Below, one piece after another: positions 22,200-64,000 of a DNA stretch of 64,000 nt. A program made the position numbers and the translations under genes. This DNA is from Macrostomum lignano (taxonomy: Eukaryota). The stretch spans positions 62,001 to 126,000 of the forward strand of contig NIVC01000380.1 in the NCBI GenBank assembly GCA_002269645.1. The letters run 5' to 3'. Numbering within the stretch: the first letter of the stretch is position 1; the number at the start of each line of letters is the position of its first letter. The notes beneath the pieces are model-generated. The model was not told the DNA's origin, searched no databases, and saw only the letters and a program-made list of their open reading frames with translations.

Positions 22200-23155
22200 G
22201 TGAGGAGAGGGTGAGGAGAGGGTGAGGAAGAGGGTGAGAAAGAGAGTGAGGAAGAGAGTGAGGAAGAGAGTGAGGAAGAGGGTGAAGAAGAGAGTGAGAA
22301 AGAGGGTGAGAAAGAGAGTGAGGAAGAGGGTGAGAAAGAGGGTGAGGAAGAGGGTGAGGAAGAGGGTGAGGAAGAGGGTGAGGAAGAGGGTGAGAAAGAG
22401 AGTGGGGAAGAGGGTGAGGAAGAGAGTGAGGAAGAGAGTGAGGAAGAGAGTGAGGAAGAGGGTGAAGAAGAGAGTGAGGAAGAGAGTGAGGAAGAGGGTG
22501 AGAAAGAGAGTGAGGAAGAGAGTGAGGAAGAGGGTGAGAAAGAGGGTGAGGAAGAGGGTGAGGAAGAGGGTGAGGAAGAGGGTGAGAAAGAGAGTGAGAA
22601 AGAGAGTGAGGAAGAGGGTGAGGAAGAGAGTGAGGAAGAGAGTGAGGAAGAGAGTGAGGAAGAGGGTGAAGAAGAGAGTGAGGAAGAGAGTGAGGAAGAG
22701 GGTGAGAAAGAGGGTGAGGAAGAGAGTGAGGAAGAGGGTGAGAAAGAGGGTGAGGAAGAGGGTGAGGAAGAGGGTGAGGAAGAGGGTGAGAAAGAGAGTG
22801 AGAAAGAGAGTGAGGAAGAGGGTGAGGAAGAGAGTGAGGAAGAGAGTGAGGAAGAGAGTGAGGAAGAGGGTGAAGAAGAGAGTGAGGAAGAGAGTGAGGA
22901 AGAGGGTGAGAAAGAGAGTGAGGAAGAGAGTGAGGAAGAGGGTGAAGAAGAGAGTGAGGAAGAGAGTGAGGAAGAGGGTGAGAAAGAGAGTGAGGAAGAG
23001 AGTGAGGAAGAGGGTGAAGAAGAGAGTGAGGAAGAGAGTGAGGAAGAGAGTGAGGAAGAGGGTGAAGAAGAGAGTGAGGAAGAGAGTGAGAAAGAGAGTG
23101 AGGAAGAGAGTGAGGAAGATGGTGAGGAAGAGAGTGAGGAAGAGAGTGAGGAAGA
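22200..23155. repeat. 12-bp minisatellite (GTGAGGAAGAGA)
   Basis: About 80 units; explains the RVRK/TLFL/SSSL/HSLP pseudo-ORFs. Confidence 0.96.
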
Positions 23156-23899
23156 GGGATCCACATAACATCCGTCACAGAGTTTGTTATAAGATTCTTA
23201 CGATTAGATCCAACACAGAATGAGTTCACGCGATATTCTAAATGAATCCGTCAAATCTAAATTAAAGTATTTCCCTACTAAAACAAAAAGGCTATCAAAA
23301 ACTATCTGCTTTAAAATAGCAGGTAGATATGCACTACAACCCAGTTACATCCTGTTGCATTCAATAATGACGAATATTGCACATGAAATTCTAGCTATAA
23401 GTTTGAACTTTGACCCCAGACTCGTAAATGTATTGTAGCTATGCATGGATTTGACTTCTGGTTTGACTGACGACAAACTGAAATTTTGTTGCTGCAATAC
23501 TTCTGCGGGCACGCGCACCTCGCGATGAATGTTGAAATGGCTGCGAGTGAATGACACATGCACAGGGCGTGCACACAGAGACTGCGCGACACAAGAGGGA
23601 CGGGCTGTCGAGGGGCTGAGAGGAGAAAGACTGATCACCCACAGCGACACCGCGACAGCGGCACGAAGTTAAGTGCCGTCTCCAGCCGGAGGGGTAATAT
23701 CTAGCGGAGGTGAAAATTTGTGTGCCTATAGCGACTGGAAGACTGGAAGCGAATAAGAGGTGGAAAAAGGAGATGGATGACTGCCGGGTAGAAAGTTTGA
23801 AGAGAGATGGAGAGCTCAGTAGAGTTGCGGGAAGACAAATAGAAGAAACGGAAAAAGCAGAGGGAGAGAGGGAATTTCGAGATGGAAGAGTGGAGGGAG

Positions 23900-29399: not shown

Positions 29400-31060
29400 T
29401 TTACACTTCTCCCTCTCACTCTCTTTTTCACTCTCCCTCTCCTTCTCCTTCTTACTCTCCCTCTCTCACTCTCCCTCTCACTCTCCCACTCACTCTCCCT
29501 CTCACTCTCCCTCTCACTCTCCCACTCACTCTCCCTCTCCTTCTCCTTCTCACTCTCCCTCTCACTCTCCCTCTCACTCTCCCACTCACTCTCCCTCTCA
29601 CTCTCCCTCTCACTCTCCCTCTCACTCTCTCACTCACTCTCCCTCTCACTCTCCCTCTCACTCTCCCTCTCACTCTCCCTCTCTCTCTCCCTCTCACTCT
29701 CCCTCTCACTCTCCCACTCACTCTCCCTCTAACTCTACCTCTCACTCTCCCTCTCACTCTCCCTCTCACTCTCCCTCTCACTCTCCCACTCACTCTCCCT
29801 CTCACTCTCCCTCTCACTCTCCCTCTCACTCTCCCACTCACTCTCCCTCTCACTCTCCCTCTCACTCTCCCACTCACTCTCCCTCTCTCTCTCCCTCTCA
29901 CTCTCCCTCTCACTCTCCCACTCACTCTCCCTCTAACTCTACCTCTCACTCTCCCTCTCACTCTCCCACTCACTCTCCCACTCACTCTCCCACTCACTCT
30001 CCCTCTCACTCTCCCTCTCACTCTCCCTCTCACTCTCCCTCTCTCTCTCCCTCTCACTCTCCCTCTCACTCTCCCACTCACTCTCCCTCTAACTCTACCT
30101 CTCCTTCTCAATCTCACTCTCCCTCTCACTCTCCCTCTACTTCTCACTCTCCCTCTCTCTCTGCTTTTCACTTTCCCTCTTATTTTCCCTCTCTCCATCT
30201 CCCTCTCACTCTCCCTCTCACTCTCCCTCTCACTCTCCCTCTCACTCTCCCTCTCACTCTCCCTCTCACTCTCCCTCTCACTCTCCCTCTCTCTCTCCCT
30301 CTCACTCTCCCTCTCACTCTCCCACTCACTCTCCCTCTAACTCTACCTCTCACTCTCCCTCTCACTCTCCCTCTCACTCTCCCTCTCACTCTCCCTCTCT
30401 CTCTCCCTCTCACTCTCCCTCTCACTCTCCCACTCACTCTCCCTCTAACTCTACCTCTCACTCTCCCTCTCACTCTCCCTCTCACTCTCCCTCTCACTCT
30501 CCCACTCACTCTCCCTCTCACTCTCCCTCTCACTCTCCCTCTCACTCTCCCACTCACTCTCCCTCTCACTCTCCCTCTCACTCTCCCACTCACTCTCCCT
30601 CTCTCTCTCCCTCTCACTCTCCCTCTAACTCTCCCACTCACTCTCCCTCTAACTCTACCTCTCACTCTCCCTCTCACTCTCCCACTCACTCTCCCACTCA
30701 CTCTCCCACTCACTCTCCCTCTCACTCTCCCTCTCACTCTCCCTCTCACTCTCCCTCTCTCTCTCCCTCTCACTCTCCCTCTCACTCTCCCACTCACTCT
30801 CCCTCTAACTCTACCTCTCCTTCTCAATCTCACTCTCCCTCTCACTCTCCCTCTACTTCTCACTCTCCCTCTCTCTCTGCTTTTCACTTTCCCTCTTATT
30901 TTCCCTCTCTCCATCTCCCTCTCACTCTCCCTCTCACTCTCCCTCTCACTCTCCCTCTCACTCTTCCTCTTACTATCCCTCTCCCACTCACTCTTCCTCT
31001 CACTCTCCCTCTCCTTCTCACTCTCACCCTCCCTCTCTCATCCTCCCTTTCTCTGACGAA
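29400..31060. repeat. 12-bp CT-rich minisatellite (CTCTCCCTCTCA) with a 716-bp higher-order duplication
   Basis: Landmarks CCTTCTCAATCTCAC (30103 and 30819) and TTTTCACTTTCCCTCTTATTTTCC (~30164 and ~30880) recur 716 bp apart. Confidence 0.93.
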
Positions 31061-33988: not shown

Positions 33989-35350
33989 ATGCGGCTCCCA
34001 CCGCTTAGCTATCTGCAATTGCTGTTTCCGCTGCTGCTAGTGGAATCGCTGCACAGGGCCGGGGCCAAGCCGACCTGCCCAACCCAGCAACCATGCCAGT
34101 GCACCGACCTGCGCATCAAATGCGTCCAGCAGGACCGGCCTCAGTTGAACTACATCAGCCGAATTCCATATTTTTCGCCTAGCAACTATGAGACCCGATC
34201 GTGGACGTACAGTTTCCACGAAATGCGAGTCAGGGACCAGGCGCTAACGAATCTAAGCCTGCAGTTCGCCTGGGGCGTGCTGAACTTGCGCAAAATCGAG
34301 GTTACAAACTCGCTGGTTCGCAGAATTTCGCCCAACGCATTCAAAGGCATCATTGGCGTTCAGTCGTTGAATCTGTCTAACAATCTTCTGTCAAGCTTGT
34401 CCTCAAATGACCTCGCCGAATTGACTCAACTACGCGAGCTGATTCTTCACGACAATCAGATTCGAGTTGTCTATCAGGGAGCATTTCAGCATACGCCGTT
34501 TGTTGCTCAACTTTATCTCAGTCACAACCGGCTGTCGGAAATACCTGAGGACATTCGACATCTGAGCAGTTTGACGCACCTTTATTTGCAGTTCAACAAC
34601 ATCTCCACTGTAAGAGACTACGCATTTGCCGGACTAAGAAAGCTAATAGTGCTTGACCTGGGCACTTTGCGTAGGAACCTGCTCATCCAGCCCAGAGCGT
34701 TCTGCGGCCTTGGTGGCAGCGACGACGGCAGTTACGGTGACGAAGCACTTGGAGGCAGCGACGCCTACACGGACACTGACTCGACATCGTCCTTAGAGAG
34801 CATCATGCCGATGTCATTAATGAGCCGAGACCGAGGCCTAGCAGCCTTGTACCTGCGGCACAATGTCCTGCACGATTTGAATCTGTGCGCCCTCGGTAAA
34901 ATCACCAGCCTAAGAGCGCTGAACCTCACTGGAAGCATCTTCCCGTGCAGTTGCCAGGCGGCTAGCTTGGCTAATCAATCTACCTGGCAGGCTGATTACG
35001 GTTTCTCGCCCAGATACGTCACCTACGAGCCCTGGCAGGTGGCCAACTGCGACAGCAATGAGCAACGCTGCTCAGAGCTGGCCAGAAGACGGAGGCAACA
35101 TTGCGACACGTCAGCCAGGTGCCGAAGCCAGCCAGCGTATCCGGGTCGGTCCAGAGTTGGCAACGGTGGCGTCATTCGAGACTGGCAGTTCACCGATACC
35201 AGACTGAGCTACCGAAACGACCAAATGAGCCAAGATAGCAACAACGGCGCAAGCGAGCCTCATCTGTACTGCAGATTGCTGCTGCTGTGCTTGAGCATGC
35301 TCAGCGTGAACTTGGTGAACAGTATATCATGGTGTCTGATTAAGTTTTAA
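33989..35350 (+). CDS. Extracellular leucine-rich repeat protein (signal peptide, LRRNT, ~8-9 LRRs, LRRCT, C-terminal hydrophobic GPI/TM segment), single exon
   Basis: 453-aa ORF. Leader MRLPPLSYLQLLFPLLLVESLH; CPTQQPCQCTDLRIKC cap; LxxLxLxxN repeats (VQSLNLSNNLL, LRELILHDNQI, VAQLYLSHNRL, LTHLYLQFNNI, LAALYLRHNVL); FPCSCQ C-cap; hydrophobic terminus LLLLCLSMLSVNLVNSISWCLIKF. Confidence 0.9.
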   Translation: MRLPPLSYLQLLFPLLLVESLHRAGAKPTCPTQQPCQCTDLRIKCVQQDRPQLNYISRIPYFSPSNYETRSWTYSFHEMRVRDQALTNLSLQFAWGVLNLRKIEVTNSLVRRISPNAFKGIIGVQSLNLSNNLLSSLSSNDLAELTQLRELILHDNQIRVVYQGAFQHTPFVAQLYLSHNRLSEIPEDIRHLSSLTHLYLQFNNISTVRDYAFAGLRKLIVLDLGTLRRNLLIQPRAFCGLGGSDDGSYGDEALGGSDAYTDTDSTSSLESIMPMSLMSRDRGLAALYLRHNVLHDLNLCALGKITSLRALNLTGSIFPCSCQAASLANQSTWQADYGFSPRYVTYEPWQVANCDSNEQRCSELARRRRQHCDTSARCRSQPAYPGRSRVGNGGVIRDWQFTDTRLSYRNDQMSQDSNNGASEPHLYCRLLLLCLSMLSVNLVNSISWCLIKF

Positions 35351-41582: not shown

Positions 41583-42257
41583 AGATTTTTGTATAAAATA
41601 GTTAGGCCGCAATATTTCACACAGGGTACTGCATATAATTCAATGATACATTTGATAGGGTTGTGTCCCAGTGCACATTTTATAAAATAACAACAGCTGC
41701 ATTATTTTTTAACTGTGGTAATATGTTGAAAAGCTACATTAAGATGCTAATAAGGTATAAATAAATGCATAAATATATGCCTTATTTTAAGATTTTTCCT
41801 AAAATTCTGTTTGATTCAGGAAGAATTAAATTGATCTTTAATACTGCCATACTTTGTTAATGGTATTTAAATTGGTCTATTTATAGTAGCTATCATTTTT
41901 AGCTGCCAGGTTATTTGCTGAATCTTTTCACTAATTTTATTTTTTGCCTTCCATAGACCATAGCACTACTAAATTGTTTGATAAATGTGACTTGAAGTTA
42001 AATATTTATTGTAGCATATATAAAACAAGTTAGACATCCTGCTAAACTTGGAAAAATCTTTATACTATCAGTTATATTGAAAAAAACTCTAATATATATT
42101 GCATCTTATGGAGCTTGCAGAATAGCAACTTTTTAATTTCTATCTGCTTAATACCTTCCTCAAGTAGATTTATTAGCTAAATAAAAGCATACTAATCTTT
42201 GAAAATATATTCGAAATAATAATTAATACCAAGCAAACTTGACGATTTCTGTCAGTG

Positions 42258-45200
42258 ATGACTCATGAAAGCCAGTCGCCATTTGTAAATGCTAACAATA
42301 GACAGAATCTGTCCTGGCTAAACATCTATCCGGCTCCGGCTGAAGCATCGGCTCGAATTGAGCGCCCTAGCTCCGGTCTGAAGCGCTATTATCGCCAACA
42401 GACTGAACTACTGACCGCCTATCAGAACTTGGTTGGTTCAGGCAACGATCACAACAACAGTGAAGAAGAGAATGATAGTCAGAATCAAAGAGAGCGCACA
42501 ACTAGCGACAATGGGGACGGCAGCGCTGAGCAAAATAACTTGTCTCCGATTGCAAGGTAGATATAGCCTATTGGGTTTGAATTTCTACTTCTTGATTACG
42601 TAGGAAACCATGGCTACAAGGTACTATAGATATTTCGTAGTGCAAGTTTGAGTATAAAATTTAAAGGGGATGTCAACTTAAGGCTCTGGAATGGAGCCCG
42701 AAGTTCAGCTCCGGCCCAAACCGACTGCAATCGATAACTTGTCGGCCCAGACGGCTAGAATCGCCGAGACATCCCATCCGGCTCCCTTCCTTGGGGTCCC
42801 AGGGGATAAAGGGGATAAAATGGGGATCTCATGTCAACTTAAGGCTCTGGAATGGAGCCCGAAGTTCAGCTCCGGCCCAAACCGACTGCAATCGATAACT
42901 TGTCGGCCCAGACGACTAGAATCGCCGAGGCATCCCATTCCGTTTCAAGTGATGAAGCTCTATTCAATTCGAATATCGCATTAGCGGGTGTATTTTATTT
43001 CAGCTATTATATATTGTTTGCATTGTAATATTTCCGTCGTTTATTTTTTCCGGATTTTAGAGAATGTTTTCGCGGTTTTGATTTGACCACTTTAGGCCAG
43101 AGATTTTCGATACTGTGCGTCAAGTATTTGTAGCATTATTTTAAGCGATATATTTTAAGTGAAATATTAATGAAGTTAAGGTTTTCGTCAGTTTTTCTTT
43201 CTTAGTTTTATGACAGGTGCAGATTTGTTGCAGATTGCGTTTTATACTTGCTAGTAATGTCCGATTTTACTTGCTCTCAATGTGGTCATCAATTCAGCAA
43301 AGCAGCCAATTTGAACCGACATCTCGAAACGACTAGATGTGGTCGCTGCTCATCTGAATCGTCTGGAGCCTTCGCGCCTCCGAGAAACGCACGAGAGGCG
43401 CTTCAGTTTCTTGCGGTCGGTGGTAAGTATGTGAAAGTTTTTTTGAACCCAAACCTTTTTCCACGAACCGCAAATGAGAAGGAGTTCAAACGTATTTGCG
43501 GTCTTAGCTATAGTGATTTCGATAGCTTCTCAGAAATGTTACCAGAAGTATCTCGCCTTCGTATTTTGACAAAGCCGTCTCGAATATTTTTGTACCTGAA
43601 GAAGCTTCGCCAAGGTTGCAGCTTTCAATCATTAGCTTTCGATTTCAACATTTCTGCCCAAAGAGCATGCGACATTTTTTGGGAGATTGCCAAGGAGCAG
43701 TACCTACGGGATCCATATCAACCGAGGTCGATAGCGTCGACTCCGATTCAGACTCTGCTTGAGGAAAACGTAGTACGCGATCAATTTATTCTCGGTGTAT
43801 TTCACACACTACTCAAAGGCAAGAAGCTTGTTCTTCTAGTGGGTGATCATACTTACTTTTATCTCCCTAAGAGCAGCTCACACCACACGCAAATTCGAAC
43901 TTACTTTTCCGGCAAGAAAATGAATGTGAACAAAAAAATGGCGGTTGTCAACAGTAGAGGAAAAATTATCTACACCGCTCCCCTTACCGCCGCTATCTCG
44001 CCAACAATGGGCGATGGGAATTTGACTGCAATGCAAGTTGACATGGAGGCTGAAGGACTAATAGAGCCCATTTTGTTGCGCATTCTGTGCTCTGTACAGA
44101 AAGATTATCACGTTATTGGCATTTTCGACAAAGGTTACAGCCACCAGCTTTGTTCACCAACTTCGGTTAACTTCCGCGACTTTATAGAGACTAATAGAAA
44201 AGGCTGCACGACGCTTCTATTTCCGACCAGTCCAGGTGACCGAGTTCTAAACGAGCAGTTTGAATTTGTAAATAATGAGGCTCCTGTTGGTGACCGATCA
44301 ATACCAGGAAAGCTTACATCAATCGAAGCAAATACAAGTCGCTGCGCTACGCTTTTCCGTTATCTCGTAGAATGTAGCTTTGCTGCAATCAAGCAGGACA
44401 AATGCATAAATGAGCGACAGGAGCCGTACCAATGGCTACATGCCCCAGAGTTTACCGAACGCAGCCGGCTCGATGTTGTTATTGAAAACTCCATGGCAAA
44501 ATTCAACCGATCGCATCCAGGATTTCAAGCTACAAGGAGTCTGCCGCCGTCATGGTCAGATTGCTCCATGTTCGAATACGGACGGAACTTTGCTAAACAT
44601 CTTTTCATTGCGAATGAGCTAGACGAAATTGAGCAACTTGAGTACAATTGCGATTTGACTCGAATACCAACGAGTTCTACCCGAAAATGGACAGCAGTGG
44701 ATCCCCTGGACCCTGAAAGTTCAGGGTTCCCCAGCGTTGACGAAAGAAATCTGGAAGAGCTTAGCATCGGCCCATACCACGTTCTTCAGTCAAAACGCTA
44801 CATCGAAAACGTCAGAGTTCATGAGGTGCTCAGTAGCTACGCTGGAGACTCGTGGCGCGATTTCGAATTGTTGATTTCTGAACTGCCAAGCCATTTAAAA
44901 TGCTGGAAGTTTCATCAGCGAGCGCCACCAAAGGGGTGGAGCAGTAAGTTTGGAGAATGGAAACCATCTTGGATATATTTAGCCGTTCTTCATTCCCGTC
45001 ATCGGTCAAAAACTTACCGAGTTGTCCTTCGTATTTGCGAAACTGCAAGCGGTAACCGATTCGGATTTCGTGACTCGGGGCTGCTGCGTCTGCATGGCTA
45101 CTTTTCATCCTCAAAGGCCGGAAGCAGGACAGCAGGGTGTGACAGTCATGTTATGGCTATGGTTAGAATGCTAGGCTGTTATGCATATCACCCCGAAAGC

Positions 45201-48200
45201 TACAACATGTGCAGCAGCAGCTTCCGATTTATTGACAGTGCTTTGCCAAAAGCACTGATTGCCAATCTTTACAATGATCAATCTGGTGGTCATCCAGCTC
45301 CAAAATGCAGCTCGCAGAGACAGTGCTGAATCGCAGCAAGATGAACAGAGGCACAGTTTAAATGCTACTGGTTCATTGAATTCGCCGAAGAAGTTATTTG
45401 GGTTGCCAAATAATGGCCTGCAGTGCTACGCAAATGCAGCAGTGCAATTGTTTCTCTGCTTGCATTCTAATGGATGCATTTTAAAAGAGACTAGCAACGA
45501 CCAAGTCCATCGAGAGCTGCTTCGTCTTCTGACGGAGATGCAACAGCGGTCTGCAACAGTCACTCCACTGTTAACGGCAGTTCGGTTGCAACATCCAGAT
45601 TCATTTCAAACAAATCAGCACCATTGCGTCAACGAATTTGTTCAAACGCTTCTAATACATCTGGAATTTCTGTCATCAGAGGCTTTCACAGAATTTTCAC
45701 TCATTCAAACTTGTCGAGATTGCCAGCGCACAAGTGCTGAAGTTCCTGTTGGCACAATCGATAACAGAGTGATTTGCATTCCTCTCTGTCAATTTGAGCG
45801 CTCAATTGTCAGTTTAGACAAAATCTTCTGCGCTTTTGTCGCTCCTCAAGTAGTGAAATGTTCGGACGCCAATTGCCTGGGCGATTGTAATCAAGGGATC
45901 GTAGTAACACCTGGAAAGTTTACCCTGATTTATCTTGATCGTGCTAGTATGGATGGCCACCTAAAGCTTCAAACTCCTGTAAGCTTTTCTTCAAGGTCAG
46001 GGGGTGTTTCTACACTTGGTAAGCCAGTGGCCACAATATCACACCATGGAAACCGACTGAAATCGGGACATTTCACAGCAAGCGTACTGAGCTGTGTGTG
46101 GACGAGAATTGACGACATGAAAGTTACGTCAGACTATAACCCGTTCGTACGTGAGCCTGAGTGCATCGTGCTCGTTGCACTTTTAAACTCGTAAAAGCAT
46201 TTTTAGCGAAAATACAATTGTTTTAAGCGAGTGTACTGTACGTTTGTATTGCATGTTTTGACATGCAGATTAAGAAACAATGTCATCCCACGCATTCTTT
46301 ACGTACCATAGGTTACATGTGAAGATAATTCAGACTGACATCAAATAACAAAAGCTTTGCATTAGTTCTTTCAATTTCTTTTAGACTCACAATTAGCTAA
46401 AAATTGGAAGTATTTTTTACTGAAGCAAAGAACTTAAACCCAAAAACCGTTTCTTAGGACTGAGAAACTTTTGCAATTATGATTTTACTCAGCTATGCGT
46501 GAGAGGCGTTACTTTATTTGCTTAAAAACGTGTGCTGCTTTGCATGACATGCTTTGTTTTTATTACTTTGATAACTTGTACAGCTTTGCATGATATGCTT
46601 TGTATCCATTACGTCATAACTTGTACAGCCTTGCGTGATATTCTTTATTTTACCAATATACATGGTTTCGGTTTATCGTCAAAAGTTCTGCTTACTAATA
46701 ACCAAATGAATTTACCAGTTAATTTTTTCAAACTGAGTTTCCAGATCGGCATTTTTAACACTGTTTCGATACGAGCAAATCATTTTTATTACTTAACAAT
46801 CAATATATAATAGCTGAAATAAAATACACCCGCTAATGCGATATTCGAATTGAATAGAGCTTCGTCACTTGAAACGGGATGGGATGTCTCGGCGATTCTA
46901 GTCGTCTGGGCCGACAAGTTATCGATTGCAGTCGGTTTGGGCCGGAGCTGAACTTCGGGCTCCATTCCAGAGCCTTAAGTTGACATGAGATCCCCATTTT
47001 ATCCCCTTTATCCCCTGGGACCCCAAGGAAGGGAGCCGGATGGGATGTCTCGGCGATTCTAGTCGTCTGGGCCGACAAGTTATCGATTGCAGTCGGTTTG
47101 GGCCGGAGCTGAACTTCGGGCTCCATTCTGGTGCTTAAGTTGACATCCCCTTTGTATCGAACGAAAAGTATTAAGTATACTGACCTAACAGTTTGAGCAG
47201 AGAGAGACAAGAGACGGAAAATGACTGGCAAAGAGGAACAAAGACTTACAGAACAGTGCACGTGAGATCCACGTCCATGATTCACCAAATCAACAGAACC
47301 TGAATAGCATATCATTAGTTCTATGAAGCCTTGATATTCGCGGAATAAAATTAGAAGTAATTACCCTTATCAGCCGTTTTATGTCGCGCTGTAAAACTGA
47401 TAAAGAACAAATTTCAAGATAAGCGATTGTAGGGTTAAGCAAATAGCGAAAGAGAGACTGGCGTGGAAAGCCGGCGCACTGATATCGATTAGGATTAAAG
47501 GAGTGAGTCATCCAACGACCTCTACCCCAAGCCTAGGCTAGCTGAACCCTTTACCCAGCCAATCAAATCGCACCAGAGCGCTTGTAAATGCGCAACACAC
47601 ACAAAGCTATATACCTATAGGCTGCAAACACTGGGGCAAAGGGGTCGATAAACTGGAGTGGGTTGGAGTAGACAGACAAGAAATACCAAACATACCGTTT
47701 TAGCAGTCCGTTCAGAACCTTTTATAGCCTAGAATGTAGCAAAAGGGCTATGACTTGAGCCTGTGTGACTAACTTATAAATCGGATTAGTTATTGTGCGA
47801 TAATTATTTGAGCAAGTGCGAAAAATTATTGAATACACATTCAAAAAAACAAAAAAAAACAGATGACGCATTTAGATATGGTTAGTGCAAGGAAGTAAAG
47901 CGTGATAAAATTGTTGAAAATAAACAATGAAAATTAAAATGAATTTCAATTTTTTTTCTCTAGCCAGAGCAAAATCAGTAAGAGTCCACCTCACGTGTGC
48001 ACCTCTGCAAAAACCCACGATCACAGGACGATTATGCCCAAGTCGCCTTGGTCACCGGTATCAACACCGGCAGCAGTTTGGACAGTTCGTCGACAGGCTG
48101 AAGCTTCTGTGCTGGCCAATATTCTATTGGGCGGCTGCAAAGCTGCAGCAGTGGCTTTGTCCGGCTCTCTAGCCGTTGTAGCCTCTCTAATTGAGTCTAG

Positions 48201-50048
48201 CCTGCAGCTGCTCAGCGGTTTTGTCGTTTGGCGGGCGAGTCAGAAAACTAGGCGACGATTTCGGTATTCGTATCCGCAGGGTCGGACTCGACTTGAGCCG
48301 GTGAGAAACCTGATATTTTTAACAGTAGAACTACCAAGGGGTTTTCCCACCGGACAATTTTTTTCGCAGACACACGAAATTCAAGAACTCTGACTAACCT
48401 TTTATTGCGCGCCTTCTCAAACAACAACCAAGTCTCCCGCCCTCCGTACCTGGTGCCATCTGTTGAAGGTCCAGAAGCTCCGTCTGAGTGAAGTCTAGTG
48501 ACCAACGAAGTTACAGCTGATGTAGACACATGTGGTCGACGTGTTGGTGAAATTTGGAGTCTTGGCAATGCTGTACAGAGGCGCAGTGCTGATTGGCGCA
48601 CAGGGGTGTACTGAATACACTAAGCGCTTATTGGGAAAAATCAGACCTGGCAGAATCGTCAAATATCTAGACGGCCCGGAAGGCCGGCGACTTGATTCTT
48701 GTTTGAGAAGGTGCGCAATAAAAAGTTCGCCCGTGTTCTTGAATTTCGTGTGCCTGCGTTGTTCCGTTCCGGCGCAGCAAAAAAATTGTCAGGGGCTGGT
48801 GTGGGGAAATTCCCCTCCCCTTGGTACGTAGATCGACGGACGAAAAAATGGCTTTGGTATTCCGACTGTTAATATATAAGGTTTCACTAGACGTTAATTT
48901 CTCTCCAGGACACCTTCAGTTTCGGTAAAAGTTCAAAAATCCAATTTGAGGAATCTTTTAGGCAATGTTCACAAAATTTAGGGCCTTTGTGAAATCAACT
49001 TGATTTACCTATGTACCTAGGTAGTTTTTGCATTTGCGTCAAAACTAATCCATATATTACAGAATGGTTGTGCTTAATCCAATAGCAATCCTACTTCAGT
49101 ATATTGTTTAACTGAGTTTTTATTCTAGAATTATCCAGCATTATACACAGTAATCGTTTCTCGTTGGACAAAAACAGGTAGCCATCGTTGTTCTAGCCGT
49201 TGTCATGGCAACAGCCACGGTGCAAATGCTGGTCCGATCTGGCGGAGAGGCGACTGTCGCCTTGGCGCAATCTGCCGGCAGCAACCGAAGCGTGCGAAAT
49301 GTAGGATTGCAAGTCGAATGTCGATGCGGCGACGTCGGCAACTGCAGCGTCGGTGAATGTCGTAGTTGGACAAAACCGATGAAAGCTCGAATAGTGAAGA
49401 CTATAGGCGAGTGCCGACGAACTCTATAGCTCCTAGCCTCAATCTCATTTTCATCTTCATGCATTAATCTCATTTTCAGGCGTCTCCGAGCTGACACCAA
49501 CGGTCGTGGCCCTCGTTGGCGCATCTGTGGCCGTGAAGGCAGTCTTGCTGATAGCCTGCCTGGCCAGCAGTCGCACTCGCGGCAGTCACAGCGGTCGCAT
49601 TCTGGCTGTCGCTCATTTCAACGACATCGTCTGCAGTTCGTTAGCGCTCGGCTCAGCGGCTGCGGCGCGCTATCTTTGGCCCTACTTAGACCCTATCGGC
49701 GCCGCTGTTATAGCGCTGTTTATAGCACAGTCCTGGATTCGAATCCTACTGCATCAGATCCGTTTGCTAACTGGTCGATGCGCCGATCACAAACTATTGC
49801 AACTGCTAATATTTGCTAGCGCCAATCACAGCCCACTAATCACTGGAGTTTGCTCTGCGACGGCTTTTCATCACGGAGTTCAATGCCTGGCCGAGGTGTC
49901 CATCCAGTTGGCGCCGGACACTCCGCTGCGATTGGCGCACGATGTCGCAGAGAAGCTGCAACAAAGGCTGGAACAAATCGAAGGTATCGAGCGAGCGTTC
50001 GTGCATCCGCACTGCGGTGACCGGCCTTGCGAGCACAAAGTGGTGTGA
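42258..50048 (+). CDS. Cation diffusion facilitator (Mn-CDF / plant MTP8-11-like metal efflux transporter), 4 exons
   Basis: Exons 42258-42556 (AG|gtag, phase 2), 47964-48300 (phase 0), 49178-49352 (phase 1) and 49480-50048 are frame-compatible. Motifs: YYRQQTELL, SVLANILLGGCK...SGSLAVVAS, YSYPQGRTRLEP, HFND, DPIGAAVIALFI and C-terminal AHDVAEKLQQRLEQIEGIERAFVH. Confidence 0.88.
42666..43016 (+). repeat. Left terminal inverted repeat (~350 bp, contains a ~110-bp direct repeat twice)
   Basis: Reverse complement of 46801-47150; internal unit at 42670-42780 recurs at 42831-42942. Confidence 0.95.
43257..45329 (+). CDS. DDE transposase, PIF/Harbinger-ISL2EU-like (N-terminal C2H2 finger, HTH, DDE_Tnp_4-type core, degenerate SWIM-like C-terminus), ~690 aa
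   Basis: CSQCGHQFSKAANLNRHL (C2H2-like); FLYLKKLRQGCSFQSLAFDFNISAQRACDIFW (HTH_Tnp_4-like); catalytic candidates LVGDHTY, IFDKGY and EANTSRCATLFRYLVECSFAAIK; C-terminal SRHRSKTYRV...KAGSRTAGCDSHV. First ATG is 43257 (the track starts at an upstream TTG). Confidence 0.9.
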   Translation: MSDFTCSQCGHQFSKAANLNRHLETTRCGRCSSESSGAFAPPRNAREALQFLAVGGKYVKVFLNPNLFPRTANEKEFKRICGLSYSDFDSFSEMLPEVSRLRILTKPSRIFLYLKKLRQGCSFQSLAFDFNISAQRACDIFWEIAKEQYLRDPYQPRSIASTPIQTLLEENVVRDQFILGVFHTLLKGKKLVLLVGDHTYFYLPKSSSHHTQIRTYFSGKKMNVNKKMAVVNSRGKIIYTAPLTAAISPTMGDGNLTAMQVDMEAEGLIEPILLRILCSVQKDYHVIGIFDKGYSHQLCSPTSVNFRDFIETNRKGCTTLLFPTSPGDRVLNEQFEFVNNEAPVGDRSIPGKLTSIEANTSRCATLFRYLVECSFAAIKQDKCINERQEPYQWLHAPEFTERSRLDVVIENSMAKFNRSHPGFQATRSLPPSWSDCSMFEYGRNFAKHLFIANELDEIEQLEYNCDLTRIPTSSTRKWTAVDPLDPESSGFPSVDERNLEELSIGPYHVLQSKRYIENVRVHEVLSSYAGDSWRDFELLISELPSHLKCWKFHQRAPPKGWSSKFGEWKPSWIYLAVLHSRHRSKTYRVVLRICETASGNRFGFRDSGLLRLHGYFSSSKAGSRTAGCDSHVMAMVRMLGCYAYHPESYNMCSSSFRFIDSALPKALIANLYNDQSGGHPAPKCSSQRQC
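45274..46194 (+). CDS. Compact ubiquitin-specific protease (peptidase C19/USP-like), transposon cargo, ~306 aa
   Basis: Cys box GLPNNGLQCYANAAVQ; QQD-box-like NQHHCVNEF; finger Zn pairs CRDC and CSDANC; His box HHGNRLKSGHFTA; WTRIDDMKV carrying the third triad residue. The ORF lies entirely between the TIRs and overlaps the transposase 3' end in the +1 frame. Confidence 0.85.
   Translation: MINLVVIQLQNAARRDSAESQQDEQRHSLNATGSLNSPKKLFGLPNNGLQCYANAAVQLFLCLHSNGCILKETSNDQVHRELLRLLTEMQQRSATVTPLLTAVRLQHPDSFQTNQHHCVNEFVQTLLIHLEFLSSEAFTEFSLIQTCRDCQRTSAEVPVGTIDNRVICIPLCQFERSIVSLDKIFCAFVAPQVVKCSDANCLGDCNQGIVVTPGKFTLIYLDRASMDGHLKLQTPVSFSSRSGGVSTLGKPVATISHHGNRLKSGHFTASVLSCVWTRIDDMKVTSDYNPFVREPECIVLVALLNS
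46801..47150 (-). repeat. Right terminal inverted repeat
   Basis: Reverse complement of 42666-43016, with about four substitutions and one short diverged patch 18-24 nt from the tip. Confidence 0.95.
48334..48824. mobile_element. TA-flanked MITE (Tc1/mariner-type signature), ~490 bp, in CDF intron 2
   Basis: TA|CCAAGGGG ... CCCCTTGG|TA. Diverged inverted arms 48334-48446 versus ~48677-48824 share GACAATTTTTT, CACACGAAATTCAAGAAC and CTTTTATTGCGC.CCTTCTCAAACAA. Confidence 0.7.
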
Positions 50049-51115: not shown

Positions 51116-52921
51116 ATGACTGGTCTATTACAAAATTCAACGCCGCTTCTGCTTCTGTGCTGCCTGGCAGCAGCAATCAACGTCTCTGCTAGCTCGTTCT
51201 GCACGTACAATTTTGCTAAATTGGTTCAGCACACTTGGACAATGCCGGAGGGCTTCGCTTCTTATGATGGTGAGTTTCTATTAATTTTTGAGCTGCAATT
51301 CTCCTATCCTGATGTTATTACAACTGCACGACTGTAACTTTTTGTTTTAGCTGCCAGCAATCATTCATCAACGAACGCTAGTGCACTGCATATACCTCGA
51401 AGTGTAGGAGACTCGACGCCAAAACAAAAAACTGCTGCAGTGCAATCAGATTCGAATGGTGAGATTGGAGTTCATCGTGTGGCTCTCTGATAATATTCTT
51501 ACTTAACGAAGTTTAAGCATCTGATCTAGGCAATTATTGACGTGAGGTCACGATATGACATTTGACATGATCCCTTAGCATCTCTGATGACATGATTCAT
51601 AGCATGTCTGATGACATGATCTATAGCATCTCTGATGACATAATCTATAGCATCTCTGATGAAATTATCTATAGCATCTCTAATGACATGATCTATAAAT
51701 GATCTATAGCATCTTTGATGACATAATTTATAGCATCTCTGATGACATATCTATAGAATCTCTGATGACATGATCTATAAATGATCTATAGCATCTCTGA
51801 TGACATATCTATAGCATCTCTGATGACATATCTATAGCATCTCTGATGACATGATCTATAAATGATCTATAGCATCTCTGATGACATATCTATAGCATCT
51901 CTGATGACATATCTATAGCATCTCTGATGACATATCTATAGCATCTCTGATGACATGATCTATAAATGATCTATAGCATCTCTGATGACATATCTATAGC
52001 ATCTCTGATGACATATCTATAGCATCTCTGATGACATATCTATAGCATCTCTGATGACATATCTATAGCATCTCTGATGACATATCTATAGCATCTCTGA
52101 TGACATATCTATAGCATCTCTGATGACATATCTATAGCATCTCTGATGACATGATCTATAAATGATCTATAGCATCTTTGATGACATAATCGATAGCATC
52201 TCTGATGACATATCTATAGCATCTCTGATGACATGATCTTTAGCATCTCTGATGACATGATCTATAGCATCTCTGATGACATGATCTATAGCATCTCTGA
52301 TGACATGATCTATGGCATCTCTGATGACATGATCTATAGCATCTCTGATGACATAATCTATAGCATCTCTGATGAAATTATCTATAGCATTTCTGATGAC
52401 ATGATCCCTTAGCATCTCTGATGACATGATCCATAGCATTTCTGATGACATGATCTTTAGAATCTTTGATGACATGATCTTTAGAATCTCTGATGACATA
52501 ATCTATAGCATCTCTGATGACATGATCCATAGCATCTTGACGACATGATCCATAACATCTGAATGACATGATCCATAGCATACACTGTAGACCTCGTGTT
52601 CTACGTCTTGAAGACATCGCTAGCCTAACATCCTCAATCCTTGCGTTGACATATCTTCCATCTGCAGGCAAATGCCCAGCAAATCTCTATGCTCCAATTG
52701 GATTCTGCAATCAACCGAGACGCTCTGGTTCCAAGCGATCAATAAAAAAATTAGCCAATGAAACAGGAGTTACGGAATCTACGACACGCGCAACGAACAA
52801 GACGACTGGTCACGTGACCGCATCCTCAGCCAATAGCCAATGTCCCAACACCAAACTAATGCTCGCTGCTGAACTATTCTCGTCAACGTCGCAAAGAAAG
52901 TCAACCAGGAAACAGAAATAA
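51116..52921 (+). CDS. Small secreted protein of unknown family (3 exons, ~170 aa)
   Basis: Exons 51116-51269 (G|gtgagt), 51351-51458 (ttttag|CT ... G|gtgaga) and 52668-52921 (ctgcag|GC ... TAA), both introns phase 1, open throughout. Signal-peptide-like PLLLLCCLAAAINVSA. No recognised domain. Confidence 0.55.
51560..52580. repeat. 23-25-bp minisatellite (ATCTATAGCATCTCTGATGACAT)
   Basis: Fills most of intron 2 of the secreted-protein gene. Confidence 0.95.
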
Positions 52922-55525: not shown

Positions 55526-58500
55526 CTAGGAGCGACAGGACTCAGTCTGACAGGCGGCGGTCACTTCCGATTCTTCAATTGGGTCGTCATCGCCGCCGCA
55601 GTGCGGCTTATCCGGTCCCAGCTTCCGGTACAGTTGCACTATTAGCTGCTGCATCTCAGCGCGTTTATTCTGAATCTCGGCGGTATTAAACCAATTCCGC
55701 ATATGCTCCTGAAAGTAGGCCTTAGTGAATTCCGGAATCGGTCGCTTGTAGAACATTTCGGCGTAGTGCAACACGTACGGGCCGCAGTCTACAAAGTTGG
55801 GCTGTTGAGGCACGTGCGGACTGAAGCCGCGCATGGTGCCTTTGTCGAATCGTTTGGGGCCGAGACCTGCGCGCTTCTTGATGTCCCACTCCACTTGCAG
55901 ATACCTGGAGGGGTGAGAAGAGTCAAATAAGCGCGCATGGCATAGGCGCATTACTGTATGAAATAAGACGCGCATCCTATGAAATGAGGCGCGCATTGTA
56001 TGAAATAAGGCGCGCATCCTATGAAATAAGGCGCGCATCATATGAAACAAAGCGGGCATCGTATGAAATTGAGCGCGCATCCTATGAAATAAAGCGCGCA
56101 TCGTATAAAAAAATACGCGCATCATACTAAATAGGCGCGCATCGTATGACACAAGCGCGCAAGATACGCGCAAAGTTTTGTTTGTTTGTTCTTTGGCCAC
56201 ACAAAGCTATCAACCTATCAAGTAGTCAATGATGCTTCATTTAATGGGGGTCCCAACTACAGAATCGAACCCTGGACCTATATGAACTAACGTCACTCAC
56301 TCTCTGATAATTTTCACGTTAGGCCCGCGGTGCGCCGTCCCAGACAGGCTGTCGAAAACCAGCACGCACGGCAACTGCAGGGTGCCGTCATCGGATCGAA
56401 CAGCTCCAGCAGGTAGCGGCTGCGGTGCTTGATCTTGACTGGAATTTGAAGGCGCCGTTGATTCGGCGGTCGTTCCATTTGGTCCCGCCGTCGCTTCTGT
56501 CTGGGCGGCCCGCTCAGCATTGAGCATGTCGTTATAGTCAACGCAGCCAGCCAGCATTGGAAAACAGATGACAACAAGGAACCAATGATAGTTCTCATTG
56601 ATTGGTATGATGATGAAGTCTTTAGAGAACAGGTCCACTTTTCGAGTCCATTTAGCTACGGACGCGTGGCGACGTTCAGCGGCGACTGACGCGTCGACAG
56701 CAACAGCCGCCGCAGCCGCCTCAGCCGCTTCAATTCCGGCGCAATGGGCCAATCGTTTGTAGAAGAACGAATTAAACAGATGAGTCCGCGCCCTCTGCTC
56801 CGGCGTTAAAAGTTCGTGCAAGATGTACTTTAAATAGAAGTCAATTATAACGTCGTTAAGATAATTGCCCGATCTTAGACAAGCCAGATCGGTGTCTGTG
56901 ATGGTGATGCCGTTAGAGCCGCCAGGTCGATAGGTGAACTTCTCAATTAGTGGCGGAGGAGGTGGAGGCGGCGGCTGCGGCACAAGTGTCGGCAAAGTAA
57001 TTGCCTTCGATGTTGCCGCCGCCGAAGGTGAGATAATTATGCGCACAGTCTGCACAGACGATGACGATAACGATAATTGGGCTTGCGCCGGCTGAGTTGG
57101 CTGGCTTAAAGATGGCGATGCTTGGGTTCTGATGAACACAATGCGCCGAGCCTGTTGTTGTTGCTGTTGCTGCTGCTGCAAAGACGGCGGGTGAAGTCTT
57201 AAAGTGGGCGTAGCAGCAGCAGAAGAAGCAACACTCGATACAGGTATCACAGCATTAGAAGCTTCTGATACTACAATAACAGCGGACGAGTCGGTAGTTC
57301 CCAATGTTGTTGCTTCTGAACTAATTGCTGTTTTCGCTGTGTCTTCTGCTTTTTCTGCAGGACTTGTTATAGCTGTAGCTGCTGTTGTTGTTGTTGTTGT
57401 TGTTAGTTCTGCTGCTGTTGTTGTTGGCGATGGTGTCATGGCGAGAAGTAATTGCGGATCGCAGTCGTGCAGTACAGACCGGCCTGAGACATCGTTAAGC
57501 TTCATTATTCGAACGCACAGCTGGGATCCGGCACGCTCGTACCAGTGTATCAACTGCTGAATGTTCGACACCAGCGGGTCTGGAGGCAATGAAAGACAGG
57601 TTTGTGTTACCGACTGATGGCGCTGAGTCACGGTTCCCCACCCCCATCCTCTTGATTGCCCATCCCCAATCTCTCGATTTCTCCATCCCCATCCTCTTGA
57701 TTTCCCCATCCCCATCCTCTTGATTTCCCCATCCCCATCCTCTTGATTTCCCCATCCCCATCCTCTTGATTTCCCCATCCCCATCCTCTTGATTTCCCCA
57801 TCCCCATCCTCTTGATTTCCCCATCCCCATCCTCTTGATTTCCCCATCCCCATCCTCTTGATTTCCCCATCCTCTTGATTTCCCCATCCCCATCCTCTTG
57901 ATTTCCCCATCCCCATCCTCTTGATTTCCCCATCCCCATCCTCTTGATTTCCCCATCCCCATCCTCTTGATTTCCCCATCCCCATCCTCTTGATTTCCCC
58001 ATCTCCATCCCCTCGATTTCCCCATCCTCTTGATTTCCCCTTCCCCTTCTTTTGATTTCCCCATCCCCATCTTCTTGATTTCCCCATCCCCTTATTTTTG
58101 ATTTCCCCATCTCCATCCCCTCGATTTTCCCATCCTCTTGATTTCCCCTTCCCCTTCTTTTGATTTCCCCATCCCCATCCTCTTGATTTCCCCATCCCCT
58201 TATTTTTGATTTCCCCATCCCCATCCCCTCGAGTTCCCCATCCCCTCGATTTCCCATCCCCATCCTCTTGATTTCCCCATCCCCATTCTCTTGATTTCCC
58301 CATTCCCATCTTTTTGACTTCTCTATCCCCATGATTTCCCCATCCCCTTCTTTTGATTTCCCTATCTCCATCCTCTCGATTTTTCCATCTCCATCCCTCG
58401 ATTCCCCATCCCCTCGAGTTCCCCATTCCTTCGATTTCCCCATTCCCAACGCCTCGACTTCCCCAGCTTCTTTTTTCCCACCCGTTTCTCCAATTTCGCC

Positions 58501-59436
58501 ACCACATGCAATCCTATCTGACCGAATCGGGAAAAATGTCCCCAAAATAAAAACATGGGACAACAGCCCAATCAGCAGCGCACCTGCGTCAGATTTATCC
58601 TCAGCCACTAATCCAATAACCCAGCGCCTGGCTCCGGTAGTAGCGCAGCACAGATAATCCTCTGGCAAGCCGGCCTGCTGGCAGATTCTGGCGCACTCCA
58701 CCTTGTCAGTTGGCCTGTAGCCAATAAAAGCCAACGGTTTAGTAGCAAAATACGTCACAGTGACAATCTTGTGAGGTATTCGAATGTAGGCTAAAGATGC
58801 CTCTCGGTGAACGCTGTCGCTACTGCCATTATGGCCATCGCTACTATTATTAAAGGGAAACTCAACGCAATCCAAGCTTAGCCGAAGCAGTCCAATTCTG
58901 GTTAAGGCGCGAAATTTAGACTTGCCAATCATTGTATGACTCAACGGGATAGACAGATTATCGATACTATTGGAATTGGATCGGTCAGGCAATATCGAGT
59001 CGAACGATATAGTTTCTTTCAGCCGTTTGCTAGGCGGCGAACAGGTCGTGTTGAGCCTCTGGGCGGCCGAATAGTAATAAGCCGAATTACGCGAAAATGA
59101 TGGACGAAGCATGACGGTCTGGACTGGCATCTGTGGAATTGCTGATGATGCTGCTGCTGTTGTTGTCGTTGCAGAATCCGACGTTATTGTCGAAGAGTCT
59201 GCTGCTGTTGCTGTTAACCGTTCGATTGGGCCAACAGTTTCAACATCGACCGCTGTGGAGGCGGCGGCGGTGGCGGCGGCGGGGGTGTCGGCGGAGGATT
59301 CGACCCCGCAAACGCCAACGCCCGACGGCTTCGAGGTGCGGATGACTGGGCTGTTGAGCAGGAAATTGACAGCGAATTTCTTTTCGAAAGGGGCGAGTAA
59401 TGATGAGTCAGTGCACTTTTAAACAGTTTTAGACAT
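55526..59436 (-). CDS. SENP6/7: SENP6/7-like SUMO/sentrin-specific protease (peptidase C48/Ulp1), 3 exons; 5' end uncertain
   Basis: Exons ~59436(or 59415)-58584 (GCAG|gtgcgc, phase 1), 57579-56301 (GA|gtgagt, phase 2) and 55904-55526. Ulp1 motifs: LRSGNYLNDVIIDFYLKY, HLFNSFFYK, KWTRKVDLFSKDFIIIPINENYHWFL (His), VLVFDSL (Asp), VPQQPNFVDCG (Gln/Cys), with the insertion typical of SENP6/7 inside the catalytic domain. An in-frame TAA sits at codon 6 after the 59436 ATG. Confidence 0.88.
55930..56160. repeat. 21-bp minisatellite (GCGCGCATCCTATGAAATAAG)
   Basis: In the last SENP intron. Confidence 0.88.
57640..58470. repeat. 23-bp minisatellite (ATCCTCTTGATTTCCCCATCCCC)
   Basis: In a SENP intron; explains the GMGKSRGW pseudo-translation. 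Confidence 0.94.
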
Positions 59437-60223: not shown

Positions 60224-60721
60224 TTAATCCGCAGCATTCTCTGCGATAGGGTTAGCGTGAACAGTAACATAGTTAATCTTGACATCCTTGACCGGTCGAT
60301 AAGTCTTATCGTCCACTGGTAGCGCCTCCAGCCTGTCAAGTACACTCAGACCATCGATAACTTTGCCGAACACAGTGTACTTATTATCCAGCATAGTCTG
60401 CTTAGCATAGGCAATAAAAAACTGGCTACCATTCATATCGGGTCCATTGTTCGCCATGGACACCGTGCCTCTCTGGCTGTGACGCAGACTCTCGTGAAAT
60501 TCATCTTTAAACTTCTCGCCCCAGATGCTGGAGCCGCCTTTGCCAGTGTTGCTGGGATCGCCAGTTTGCACAATGAAACCGCGAATGTTCCTATGAAATA
60601 CGCAGCCATTATAGTAGTCTGTTGCGCATAGTGCTAGAAAATTTTCGCAAGTTTTCGGACACAGCTCGCATTCTAATTCGAGCTTTATGTCGCCCAGATC
60701 TGTGTGCAGAGTGACTGCCAT
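60224..60721 (-). CDS. PPIL3: Peptidyl-prolyl cis-trans isomerase-like 3 (cyclophilin), intronless CDS, 165 aa
   Basis: MAVTLHTDLGDIKLEL...PKTCENFLALCA..YYNGCVFHRNIRGFIVQTGDP...MANNGPDMNGSQFFI...YTVFGKVIDG...KTYRP...TVHANP closely follows human PPIL3 as I recall it. Acceptor-like CTAACAG lies 25 nt upstream of the ATG, and AATAAA is at ~60113-60118 on the minus strand. Confidence 0.93.
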   Translation of the reverse strand: MAVTLHTDLGDIKLELECELCPKTCENFLALCATDYYNGCVFHRNIRGFIVQTGDPSNTGKGGSSIWGEKFKDEFHESLRHSQRGTVSMANNGPDMNGSQFFIAYAKQTMLDNKYTVFGKVIDGLSVLDRLEALPVDDKTYRPVKDVKINYVTVHANPIAENAAD

Positions 60722-60819
60722 GCAATAATTTGAGGTGGAATTAATTCTGTTAGTTTTTTGTTTATACAAATCAATGAGAGGCTTAAACAGTAAAAAATCA
60801 ATTGAAAAAAAATTTGGTG

Positions 60820-60970
60820 GCCACAAATGATAAAAGTATTAATAAATCGATAATAGTATTGATATAAATCGATAATAGTACTGATAATATAGATCGATAA
60901 TAATATTGACATAAATCCATAATAGTATTAATATTAATCGAAAATAGTATTGACATAAATCGATAATCGA
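60820..60970. repeat. 22-bp AT-rich minisatellite (ATCGATAATAGTATTGATATAA)
   Basis: Tandem units upstream of PPIL3. Confidence 0.8.
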
Positions 60971-63219: not shown

Positions 63220-64000
63220 TAATCTCACTGTCTAATCTCAGCCTGTTGTCATCACTGTCTTATCTCAGTGTCTAATCTCAGTCTGTGCTCACTGTCTAAT
63301 CTCAGCCTGTGCTCACTGTCTTATCTCAGCCTGTGCTCACTGTCTTATCTCAGCCTGTGCTCACTGTCCAATCTCAGCCTGTGCTCACTGTCTAATCTCA
63401 GCCTGTGCTCACTGTCCAATCTCAGCCTGTGCTCACTGTCTAATCTCACTGTCTAATCTCAGCCTGTGCTCACTGTCTAATCTCAGCCTGTGCTCACTGT
63501 CCAATCTCAGCCTGTGCTCACTGTCTAATCTCAGCCTGTGCTCACTGTCTAATCTCAGTCTGTGCTCACTGTCTAATCTCAGCCTGTGCTCACTGTCTAA
63601 TCTCACTGTCTAATCTCACTGTCTAATCTCACTGTCTAATCTCAGCCTGTGCTCACTGTCTAATCTCACTGTCTAATCTCAGCCTGTGCTCACTGTCTAA
63701 TCTCAGCCTGTGCTCACTGTCTAATCTCAGCCTGTGCTCACTGTCTAATCTCACTGTCTAATCTCAGCCTGTGCTCACTGTCTAATCTCAGCCTGTGCTC
63801 ACTGTCTAATCTCACTGTCTAATCTCAGCCTGTGCTCACTGTCTAATCTCACTGTCTAATCTCAGCCTGTGCTCACTGTCTAATCTCAGCCTGTGCTCAC
63901 TGTCTAATCTCAGCCTGTGCTCACTGTCTAATCTCAGCCTGTGCTCACTGTCTAATCTCAGCCTGTGCTCACTGTCTAATCTCAGCCTGTGCTCACTGTC
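63220..64000. repeat. 24-bp minisatellite (CTCACTGTCTAATCTCAGCCTGTG) with 12-bp subunits
   Basis: In the CCDC13-like intron; runs off the window edge. Confidence 0.96.

Follow-up and report, generated by a model that had tools for sequence, protein, structure and literature searches.

Spy elements are DNA transposons whose signature is an insertion between AAA and TTT without target-site duplication (PMC4122938). The catalogued Spy elements with transposases of 650-716 aa all have AAA and TTT at their flanks (PMC11304231 Table S1), and it has been reported that Spy transposases alone mobilise DNA bordered by terminal inverted repeats (TIRs) into AAATTT sites in human cells (PMC11304231). Proteases acting on ubiquitin have been described in the Helentrons, where UCH forms a stable part of the subgroups c and d of HLE2 (PMC11417382) and where the VTD domains of zebrafish elements are biochemically active deubiquitinases (DUBs) (PMC9741609). 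Here we report a nearly intact cut-and-paste DNA transposon of 4485 bp in a stretch of 64,000 nucleotides of Macrostomum lignano (assembly GCA_002269645.1, contig NIVC01000380.1, positions 62,001 to 126,000 of the forward strand), hereafter the window, whose own numbering is used throughout. The element occupies 42666-47150, which are exactly the boundaries proposed in an initial annotation of this DNA, and it encodes two overlapping open reading frames, ORF1 and ORF2. We regard it as likely that it is a Spy-like transposon of a lineage whose transposase bears a C-terminal ubiquitin-specific protease (USP) domain, attached via a disordered S/Q/E-rich linker, and that the window copy has been split in two by a single base. 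The window contains one copy of this TIR family, and this copy is the whole basis for the statements made here about the genome itself.

ORF2 is a true USP-fold protein whose catalytic apparatus is intact by sequence. It matched the Pfam family UCH (PF00443), as had been expected, at E 6.1e-10 and 39.6 bits against a cut-off of 23.9, over aa 48-291 of its 311-aa version. Counting residues from the ATG (306-aa version), the oxyanion Asn46 and Cys51 lie within GLPNNGLQCY, the catalytic His266 in SGHFT and Asp280/281 in WTRIDD, and the finger cysteines form the pairs C147/C150 and C196/C201, so that every USP motif listed in the initial annotation was recovered. The Cys and His boxes align to those of USP12. 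Upstream of this domain, the N-terminal part of ORF2 (about 40 aa) is an S/Q/E-rich linker that is predicted to be disordered. The AlphaFold2 (AF2) model, built from a seven-sequence family alignment, reached a mean predicted local distance difference test score (pLDDT) of 77.8 and a predicted template modelling score (pTM) of 0.76, with residues 1-45 below 50. When this model was compared with the PDB by Foldseek, 243 matches were obtained at E<=1e-3, the best 50 of which were all USP catalytic domains. The leaders were USP2, USP46, USP18, USP15 and USP4 (E 6e-15 to 1e-13, template modelling (TM) score ~0.6-0.65), with USP2 at the top (E 6.3e-15, TM 0.64).

The USP family to which ORF2 belongs appears from database comparisons to be highly divergent and without a close cellular relative. 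When ORF2 was compared by a full HMMER scan with 1.84 billion representative proteins, 18 matches only were returned at E<=1e-3. No match was found by a word-indexed protein search with ORF2 alone, and the same kind of search with the USP family alignment reached one family member and, otherwise, only canonical USP5/13-like proteins. The family carries the signature Q-H-C (QHC) where USPs usually show a QQD box, and one relative (P0003) has a Ser at the first Asp position (ISDES). The oxyanion Asn, the Cys, the His and the Asp/Asn are nevertheless retained in nearly all family members, at 22-36% identity.

The linkage between this protease and a transposase is found well beyond the window. The best match of ORF2 in the HMMER scan, P0002 (35% identity, E 2.9e-49), starts with homology to the C-terminus of ORF1 (ILGHYSYEPDSFRQRF... 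in P0002 vs MLGCYAYHPESYNMCSS... in ORF1) and continues, without a stop, through an S/Q/E-rich linker into the USP. Its contig L002 holds both parts in a single ORF, matched in frame +2 at the C-terminus of the transposase (tblastn E 1e-5) as well as at the USP (E 2e-56). A second contig from the same Joint Genome Institute (JGI) sample, L001, encodes P0001, a homologue 50% identical to ORF1, and the transposase C-terminal frame of L001 remains open, entering the same linker, as far as the contig reaches. L001 and L002 share 89-95% nucleotide identity in their overlap, L002 having a 137-nt deletion; they are therefore two copies of one transposon family, with a transposon-like multiplicity in one sample. 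A third contig of this sample (L007) holds a degenerate copy of a second family, in which transposase fragments are followed by USP fragments on the same strand.

More distant relatives show the same arrangement. P0008 (L004, 518 aa, from an ENA metagenome) and P0014 (L008, 768 aa, from a Tara Oceans scaffold) are each a single ORF with a SWIM motif, a low-complexity linker and a USP. Their SWIM-type motifs are intact (FCDCESGMRTNAACCH and WCSCRMGGRTNTLCAH), and the module preceding them aligns to ORF1 at about residues 535-640 (BLASTP E 0.002; hhalign E 5.8e-4 over 102 columns). ORF1 itself contains a degenerate SWIM-like motif, GYFSSSKAGSRTAGCDSHV, at aa 614-632 (45096-45152), shortly before the USP linker; compared with P0008 and P0014, the window counterpart reads GYFSSSKAGSRTAGCDSH, i.e. 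SSS...CDSH vs CxC...CxH. A SWIM finger is not mentioned in the PHIS transposase descriptions with which we compared it. Related elements are ~50% identical to the window element in the transposase and 35% in the USP. Taken together, these alignments show the USP as a C-terminal domain of the transposase in two or more diverged families. It has been conserved for long in this transposase lineage and is thus, across families, selected in the long term. JGI metagenome contigs, scanned with the alignment of the transposase as well as with that of the USP, yielded no related loci, nor did scans of IMG/VR and of GTDB genomes, and none of the relatives was recovered at full length with its two TIRs. 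Outside the family, the nearest USP is P0007 (box GLPNNDGVSCYANAALQ), which is encoded by L009, an AT-rich sequence (positions 1-3954; Logan SRR31149412) with an Ulp1-like Cys motif, DCGPFAMAFA, followed by tandemly repeated USP domains. L009 was rejected as a Spy relative, as it encodes a polyprotein with an Ulp1-like motif and USPs; this multi-protease polyprotein comes possibly from another mobile element.

How ORF1 and ORF2 stand to each other in the window copy can be read against these relatives. Both frames are uninterrupted between the TIRs, as had been described; what the initial annotation did not contain is that they overlap by 56-71 nt, the stop codon of ORF1 lying at 45327-45329. 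If the A4 run at 45302-45305 is shortened by one A, they merge into a single 978-aa ORF (43257-46194). Because the relatives have one reading frame and the window copy is one nucleotide away from the 978-aa ORF, the sequences are best explained by a USP that is a domain of the transposase, at its C-terminus. The two-gene transposase-plus-DUB module that had been put forward is therefore not supported in that form: the frame is fused in P0002/L002, L001, P0008/L004 and P0014/L008, and the window copy is one base off. The +1 frame would be explained most simply by the insertion of one base into the linker, the A4 run being one possible place, and this base may have arisen by a real and recent mutation or from an error of assembly. 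The window copy thus encodes either a complete transposase lacking the USP, with the USP ORF left stranded, or, in the case of an assembly error, the 978-aa fusion.

The boundaries of the element are well marked (Table 1). The near-identical TIRs of about 350 bp that had first been noticed measured 355 bp at 97.5% identity. A repeat finder delimited inverted arms of 342 nt at 42689-43030 and 46787-47128 (97% complementary), and besides these arms the extreme ends of the element show an exact terminal match of 17-20 nt. The terminal 17-mer GGGGATGTCAACTTAAG occurs at both element ends only, with 0.04 occurrences expected by chance. Within each TIR lie two direct subrepeats at a spacing of 161 bp, both of which open with a copy of the terminal motif; they are candidate reiterated binding sites for the transposase. 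The junctions read TTTAAA/GGGGATG... on the left and ...CATCCCC/TTTGTA on the right, with no target-site duplication in this single copy. Flanks of AAA and TTT would be encountered by chance with a probability of ~7e-4 at ~30% A and ~30% T.

Table 1. Features of the transposon and of its insertion site, in window coordinates.
Feature	Position	Strand	Description
Host AAA	42663-42665	.	Abuts the 5' end of the element; half of the AAA/TTT target
Left TIR	42666-43020	+	355 bp, begins GGGGATGTCAACTTAAG
Left-TIR direct subrepeats	42670-42777, 42831-42938	+	98% identical, 161 bp spacing
ORF1	43257-45329	+	690 aa from ATG; open frame from 43248 = 693 aa
Overlap/frame-shift zone	45259-45329	+	Both frames open; ORF2 is +1 relative to ORF1
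ORF2	45274-46194	+	306 aa from ATG; open frame from 45259 = 311 aa
USP (peptidase C19) catalytic domain	45397-46191	+	ORF2 ~aa 42-306
3' non-coding part	46195-46796	+	~2.5-3 copies of a 45-46-bp tandem repeat, 46513-46651
Right TIR	46797-47150	-	97.5% identity to left TIR (BLASTN + MAFFT)
Right-TIR direct subrepeats	46877-46967, 47038-47128	-	100% identical to each other
Host TTT	47151-47153	.	Abuts the 3' end of the element

ORF1 is probably a DDE transposase of the PHIS type, an assignment with weaker support than that of ORF2 as a USP. At its N-terminus, a C2H2 finger was found at aa 5-28 (Pfam E 0.0017), whose profile matches consensus zinc fingers at E 3e-7; a profile search of the PDB with ORF1 matched this finger alone. 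It is followed by a helix-turn-helix (HTH) of the HTH_Tnp_4 type at aa 107-145 (E 6.1e-5, 23 bits, under the cut-off of 27), which was also found in the homologue P0001 (E 2.1e-4). P0001 gave in addition a weak match to DDE_Tnp_4 (E 0.011), exactly across the YSGKK...PG block. ORF1 contains the motif series LLVGDHTY, YFSGKK (aa 216), IFDKGY and VECSFAAIK, which we take to be the PHIS/IS5 pattern of the DDE_Tnp_4 family. From the reading of these motifs and from a low-confidence model, D197, D291 and E372 are candidate DDE residues. The DDE region and the C-terminal region of ORF1, when scanned separately against NCBIfam and Pfam, gave no match. Of the two domains that had been expected from a Pfam check of ORF1, HTH_Tnp_4 was therefore recovered below its threshold, and DDE_Tnp_4 was not matched.

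The likeness to Spy (Spy-1..7_BMo, cgSpy and cvSpy, which belong to PHIS and are filed under ISL2EU in Repbase) lies in several traits. Both have an AAA/TTT insertion without duplication and long TIRs starting with GG(G), the 355 bp of the window element falling within the reported 5-1474 bp, and ORF1 corresponds to the Spy transposases in its length of ~690 aa and, putatively, in two N-terminal DNA-binding motifs, including an HTH of the HTH_Tnp_4 type, and a DDE core. The terminal octamer differs: GGGGATGT in the window matches the Spy consensus GGANNNNG at positions 1-2 only. The Spy terminal motif does not seem to be strict, because the active cgSpy, which starts with GGGCCTGG after AAA (as read from a primer), also departs from the consensus at position 3. 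A second difference is that published Spy elements are described as transposase-only, whereas the window element adds a USP downstream of the transposase or fused to it. Annotated Spy transposases were not reached from ORF1 by HMMER or by word search, being too divergent. The assignment as a Spy/PHIS-type transposon is thus upheld in the form of a Spy-like PHIS DNA transposon, based on the AAA/TTT junction, the layout, the HTH and the DDE motifs; we call the element Spy-like, and not a proven member of Spy, since it was assigned by junction, size and motifs. One published element may be closer to it than its description indicates. Hyvu-Spy-1 of Hydra vulgaris has an ORF of 963 aa, compared with ~690 aa for other Spy transposases, i.e. 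~270 aa longer (PMC11304231 Table S1). Known from its ORF length alone, which is near 978 aa, it may be a fused relative whose USP went unremarked.

Several observations weigh against a Spy-like transposase that carries the USP as its own domain. The frameshift is known from one copy of the TIR family, that of the window, and ORF2 has an ATG of its own with an A at -3. All relatives are short metagenomic contigs, several of them with stops or frame shifts, and one (L005) is without transposase similarity upstream of its USP. On the side of the transposase, Pfam gave no DDE_Tnp_4 match in ORF1 itself, the Pfam support for a DDE domain is sub-threshold and no transposase match of ORF1 or P0001 attains a curated threshold. 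Moreover, the candidate catalytic residues of ORF1 are spaced D(93)D(80)E vs D(79-80)D(44-62)E in the Spy transposases as defined in 2014, and the AF2 model of ORF1, made from a two-sequence alignment, was unusable (pLDDT 32).

A rival explanation is a genuine two-gene module, in which transposase and USP are separate proteins, ORF2 being expressed from its ATG at 45274 via an internal promoter, an alternative transcript or reinitiation, and in which the split is the selected state. ORF1 and ORF2 are indeed both intact, 690 aa is the size of a complete Spy transposase, the ATG with its A at -3 lies inside the short overlap, and a second ORF is used by other PHIS groups. However, the USP shares its frame with the C-terminus of the transposase in three ORFs that belong to two diverged families, and a single-base difference is all that the split requires. 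An evolved two-ORF state is the least parsimonious option. An ATG in a 23-codon overlap is expected by chance in about 1 in 3 cases, and overlapping bicistronic expression is unusual in eukaryotes. We consider such a module unlikely.

A different objection concerns the protease itself, which might be a catalytically dead or decaying passenger, or a mere ubiquitin-binding module, with no enzymatic role in transposition. The high divergence of the family, with its 18 matches among 1.84 billion representatives, the QHC in place of the QQD box and the Ser of P0003 could all be taken in this sense, and ORF1 alone has the length of Spy transposases that are reported to be active without a USP (PMC11304231). 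Decay is nevertheless difficult to reconcile with the persistence of Asn, Cys, His and Asp/Asn at such low identity, with a USP fold that is predicted confidently and with a linkage kept over ~50% transposase divergence, and we judge a passenger to be improbable.

It has also to be asked whether the window copy still makes the fusion, its frame being restored by a micro-intron or by +1 ribosomal frameshifting. Introns from a GT at 45286 or 45289 to the AG at 45339-45340 would be 55 or 52 nt long, both 3n+1 lengths that land in the open ORF2 frame, but the donors (GTGGTC, GTCATC) and the acceptors are without consensus features or a polypyrimidine tract. Similarly, a +1 shift on the stop codon of ORF1 (UGC UGA A, with GAA being read) is compatible with the ORF2 frame, which is open across this stop, but neither a stimulatory structure nor a slippery site was identified there. 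The relatives need no such device, and restoration of the frame seems very improbable. Finally, the one-off capture of a host USP fragment, or a host gene lying between inverted repeats, is hardly credible even though a single copy was examined in the genome, because the transposase-USP linkage (seen in no fewer than three contigs of other samples) and the catalytic positions persist across diverged families, and the USP has no close cellular relative, its ORF is intronless and the TIR ends and the AAA/TTT junction are precise; the suggestion in the initial annotation that the protease is more than such a capture is borne out by this linkage.

If the transposase of this lineage does carry the USP as its C-terminal domain, the DDE core would excise the element and reinsert it at AAATTT sites, as other Spy elements do experimentally, while the tethered USP might strip off ubiquitin, either in cis or locally. 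Possible substrates are the transposase itself, which would be shielded from proteasomal turnover, or chromatin or repair factors at the site of transposition. The sequence does not discriminate among these substrates, and the modifier acted on may be ubiquitin or another, such as an ISG15-like one; the structural neighbours of ORF2 include USP18 as well as many ubiquitin-specific USPs. We infer both the DUB activity and the role in transposition by analogy; a protective or anti-restriction role of this kind has also been put forward for the tegument DUBs of herpesviruses and for the VTD and OTU domains found in Helentrons (PMC9741609), and the UCH domains of Helentrons have likewise been the subject of such a proposal. 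A bolder proposal, which we put forward tentatively, is that the element represents an unrecognised Spy-like clade of several marine or aquatic eukaryotes in which an active USP is permanently fused and needed for efficient transposition, and that this clade converged with Helentrons and herpesviruses on a DUB of its own. In such a permanent fusion, the DUB would shield the transposase from ubiquitin-proteasome restriction, or erase ubiquitin marks at the site of excision or integration.

Other elements that carry proteases or accessory genes resemble the window element in part. In Helentrons (HLE2; UCH, OTU or VTD = Herpes_teg_N), a deubiquitinase-class cysteine protease is likewise placed in or beside the transposition protein, at a conserved position, and UCH is the same Pfam family as that of the window USP, a likeness at the level of the Pfam family. 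Helentrons are, however, rolling-circle elements with a RepHel protein (HUH endonuclease + helicase) and without TIRs or a DDE transposase, in contrast to the cut-and-paste DDE element of the window, in which no Pfam match to Helitron_like_N or PIF1 was found. Ginger2/TDD and some Mutator-like and CACTA elements carry Ulp1 (C48) SUMO-protease domains, whose presumed function is counter-silencing or regulatory. These elements resemble ours in associating a protease for a ubiquitin-like modifier with a DDE transposase, but their protease belongs to C48 and not to the C19 clan and fold, and they are members of other transposon superfamilies. PIF/Harbinger and ISL2EU probably share with the window element the PHIS superfamily and the same type of HTH, and they too have an accessory coding capacity. 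PIF/Harbinger differs by a Myb/SANT second ORF and a TWA duplication (3 bp), where the window flanks are AAA and TTT; ISL2EU differs by a YqaJ exonuclease ORF, a THAP domain in the transposase and an AT duplication. Neither Myb, THAP nor YqaJ was matched in the Pfam scans of the element proteins, and there is no AT duplication at the flanks.

With regard to novelty, neither of the words 'ubiquitin' and 'protease' occurs in PMC4122938, in PMC4482050 or in PMC11304231 (the last including its supplement), and a search of the full-text literature on transposases and deubiquitinases of the USP or UCH kind brought up no case in a DDE transposon. The initial annotation had presented a USP as unfamiliar cargo for a Spy/PHIS element, and this part stands, as we found no published USP on Spy/PHIS; it has to be limited by the fact that UCH is already present in Helentrons (PMC11417382). 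A transposon-borne DUB, and even a transposon-borne USP, is thus already known, whereas the fusion of a USP to a PHIS/Spy-type DDE transposase appears new and is apparently undescribed.

The element probably lies in an intron of a + strand gene for a cation-efflux (cation diffusion facilitator, CDF) metal transporter, in the same orientation as that gene. Cation_efflux matches on the + strand were found at 47995-48393 and 49506-50048, ZT_dimer matches are also present downstream of the element, and a possible upstream exon at 42255-42560 (+) encodes a CDF-like N-terminal motif, RYYRQQTELL. Elsewhere in the window, an Ulp1/Peptidase_C48 protease extends across two adjacent ORFs (224 aa and 736 aa) on the - strand at 55526-58507, with its N-terminal part in 56297-58507 (E 1.2e-19) and its C-terminal part in 55526-56200 (E 3.8e-8); the long ORF partly traverses a 23-bp minisatellite (57634-58413). 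No TIRs were found near these ORFs, which may represent a SENP-like gene of the host or a further mobile element with a protease. Two further ORFs are ordinary host genes, namely an intact leucine-rich-repeat ORF of 453 aa at 33989-35350 (+; LRR_8 E 3.9e-29) and a cyclophilin ORF of 200 aa at 60224-60826 (-; Pro_isomerase E 2.4e-51). The density of minisatellites in the window is exceptional, with 63 rows at score >=150 in Tandem Repeats Finder (TRF), examples being 6055-6887, 9922-10864, 22200-23156, 29408-31037, 51576-52581 and 63264-64000. The Pfam matches 'Bactofilin' (29452-30198) and 'TBX2-3_RD' (11709-12302) were discarded as low-complexity artefacts of 12-bp tandem repeats, and several long 'ORFs' of the window are likewise artefacts of such repeats.

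To conclude, ubiquitin-family proteases recur in mobile elements: OTU, VTD and UCH in Helentrons, tegument DUBs in herpesviruses and Ulp1 in Mutator- and Ginger-type elements. This recurrence suggests that mobile DNA meets a general host barrier in the ubiquitin system. To our knowledge, no transposon DUB has yet been tied to a transposition phenotype. Spy is among the few superfamilies with a simple and highly active one-protein system working in human cells (cgSpy), and a natural USP on a Spy-type transposase would therefore offer a tractable test of the role of a DUB. For the classification of transposons, the element would add a new domain architecture, C2H2-HTH-DDE-SWIM-like-USP, and it would mark divergent USP genes in the genomes of invertebrates and plankton as possibly derived from transposons.

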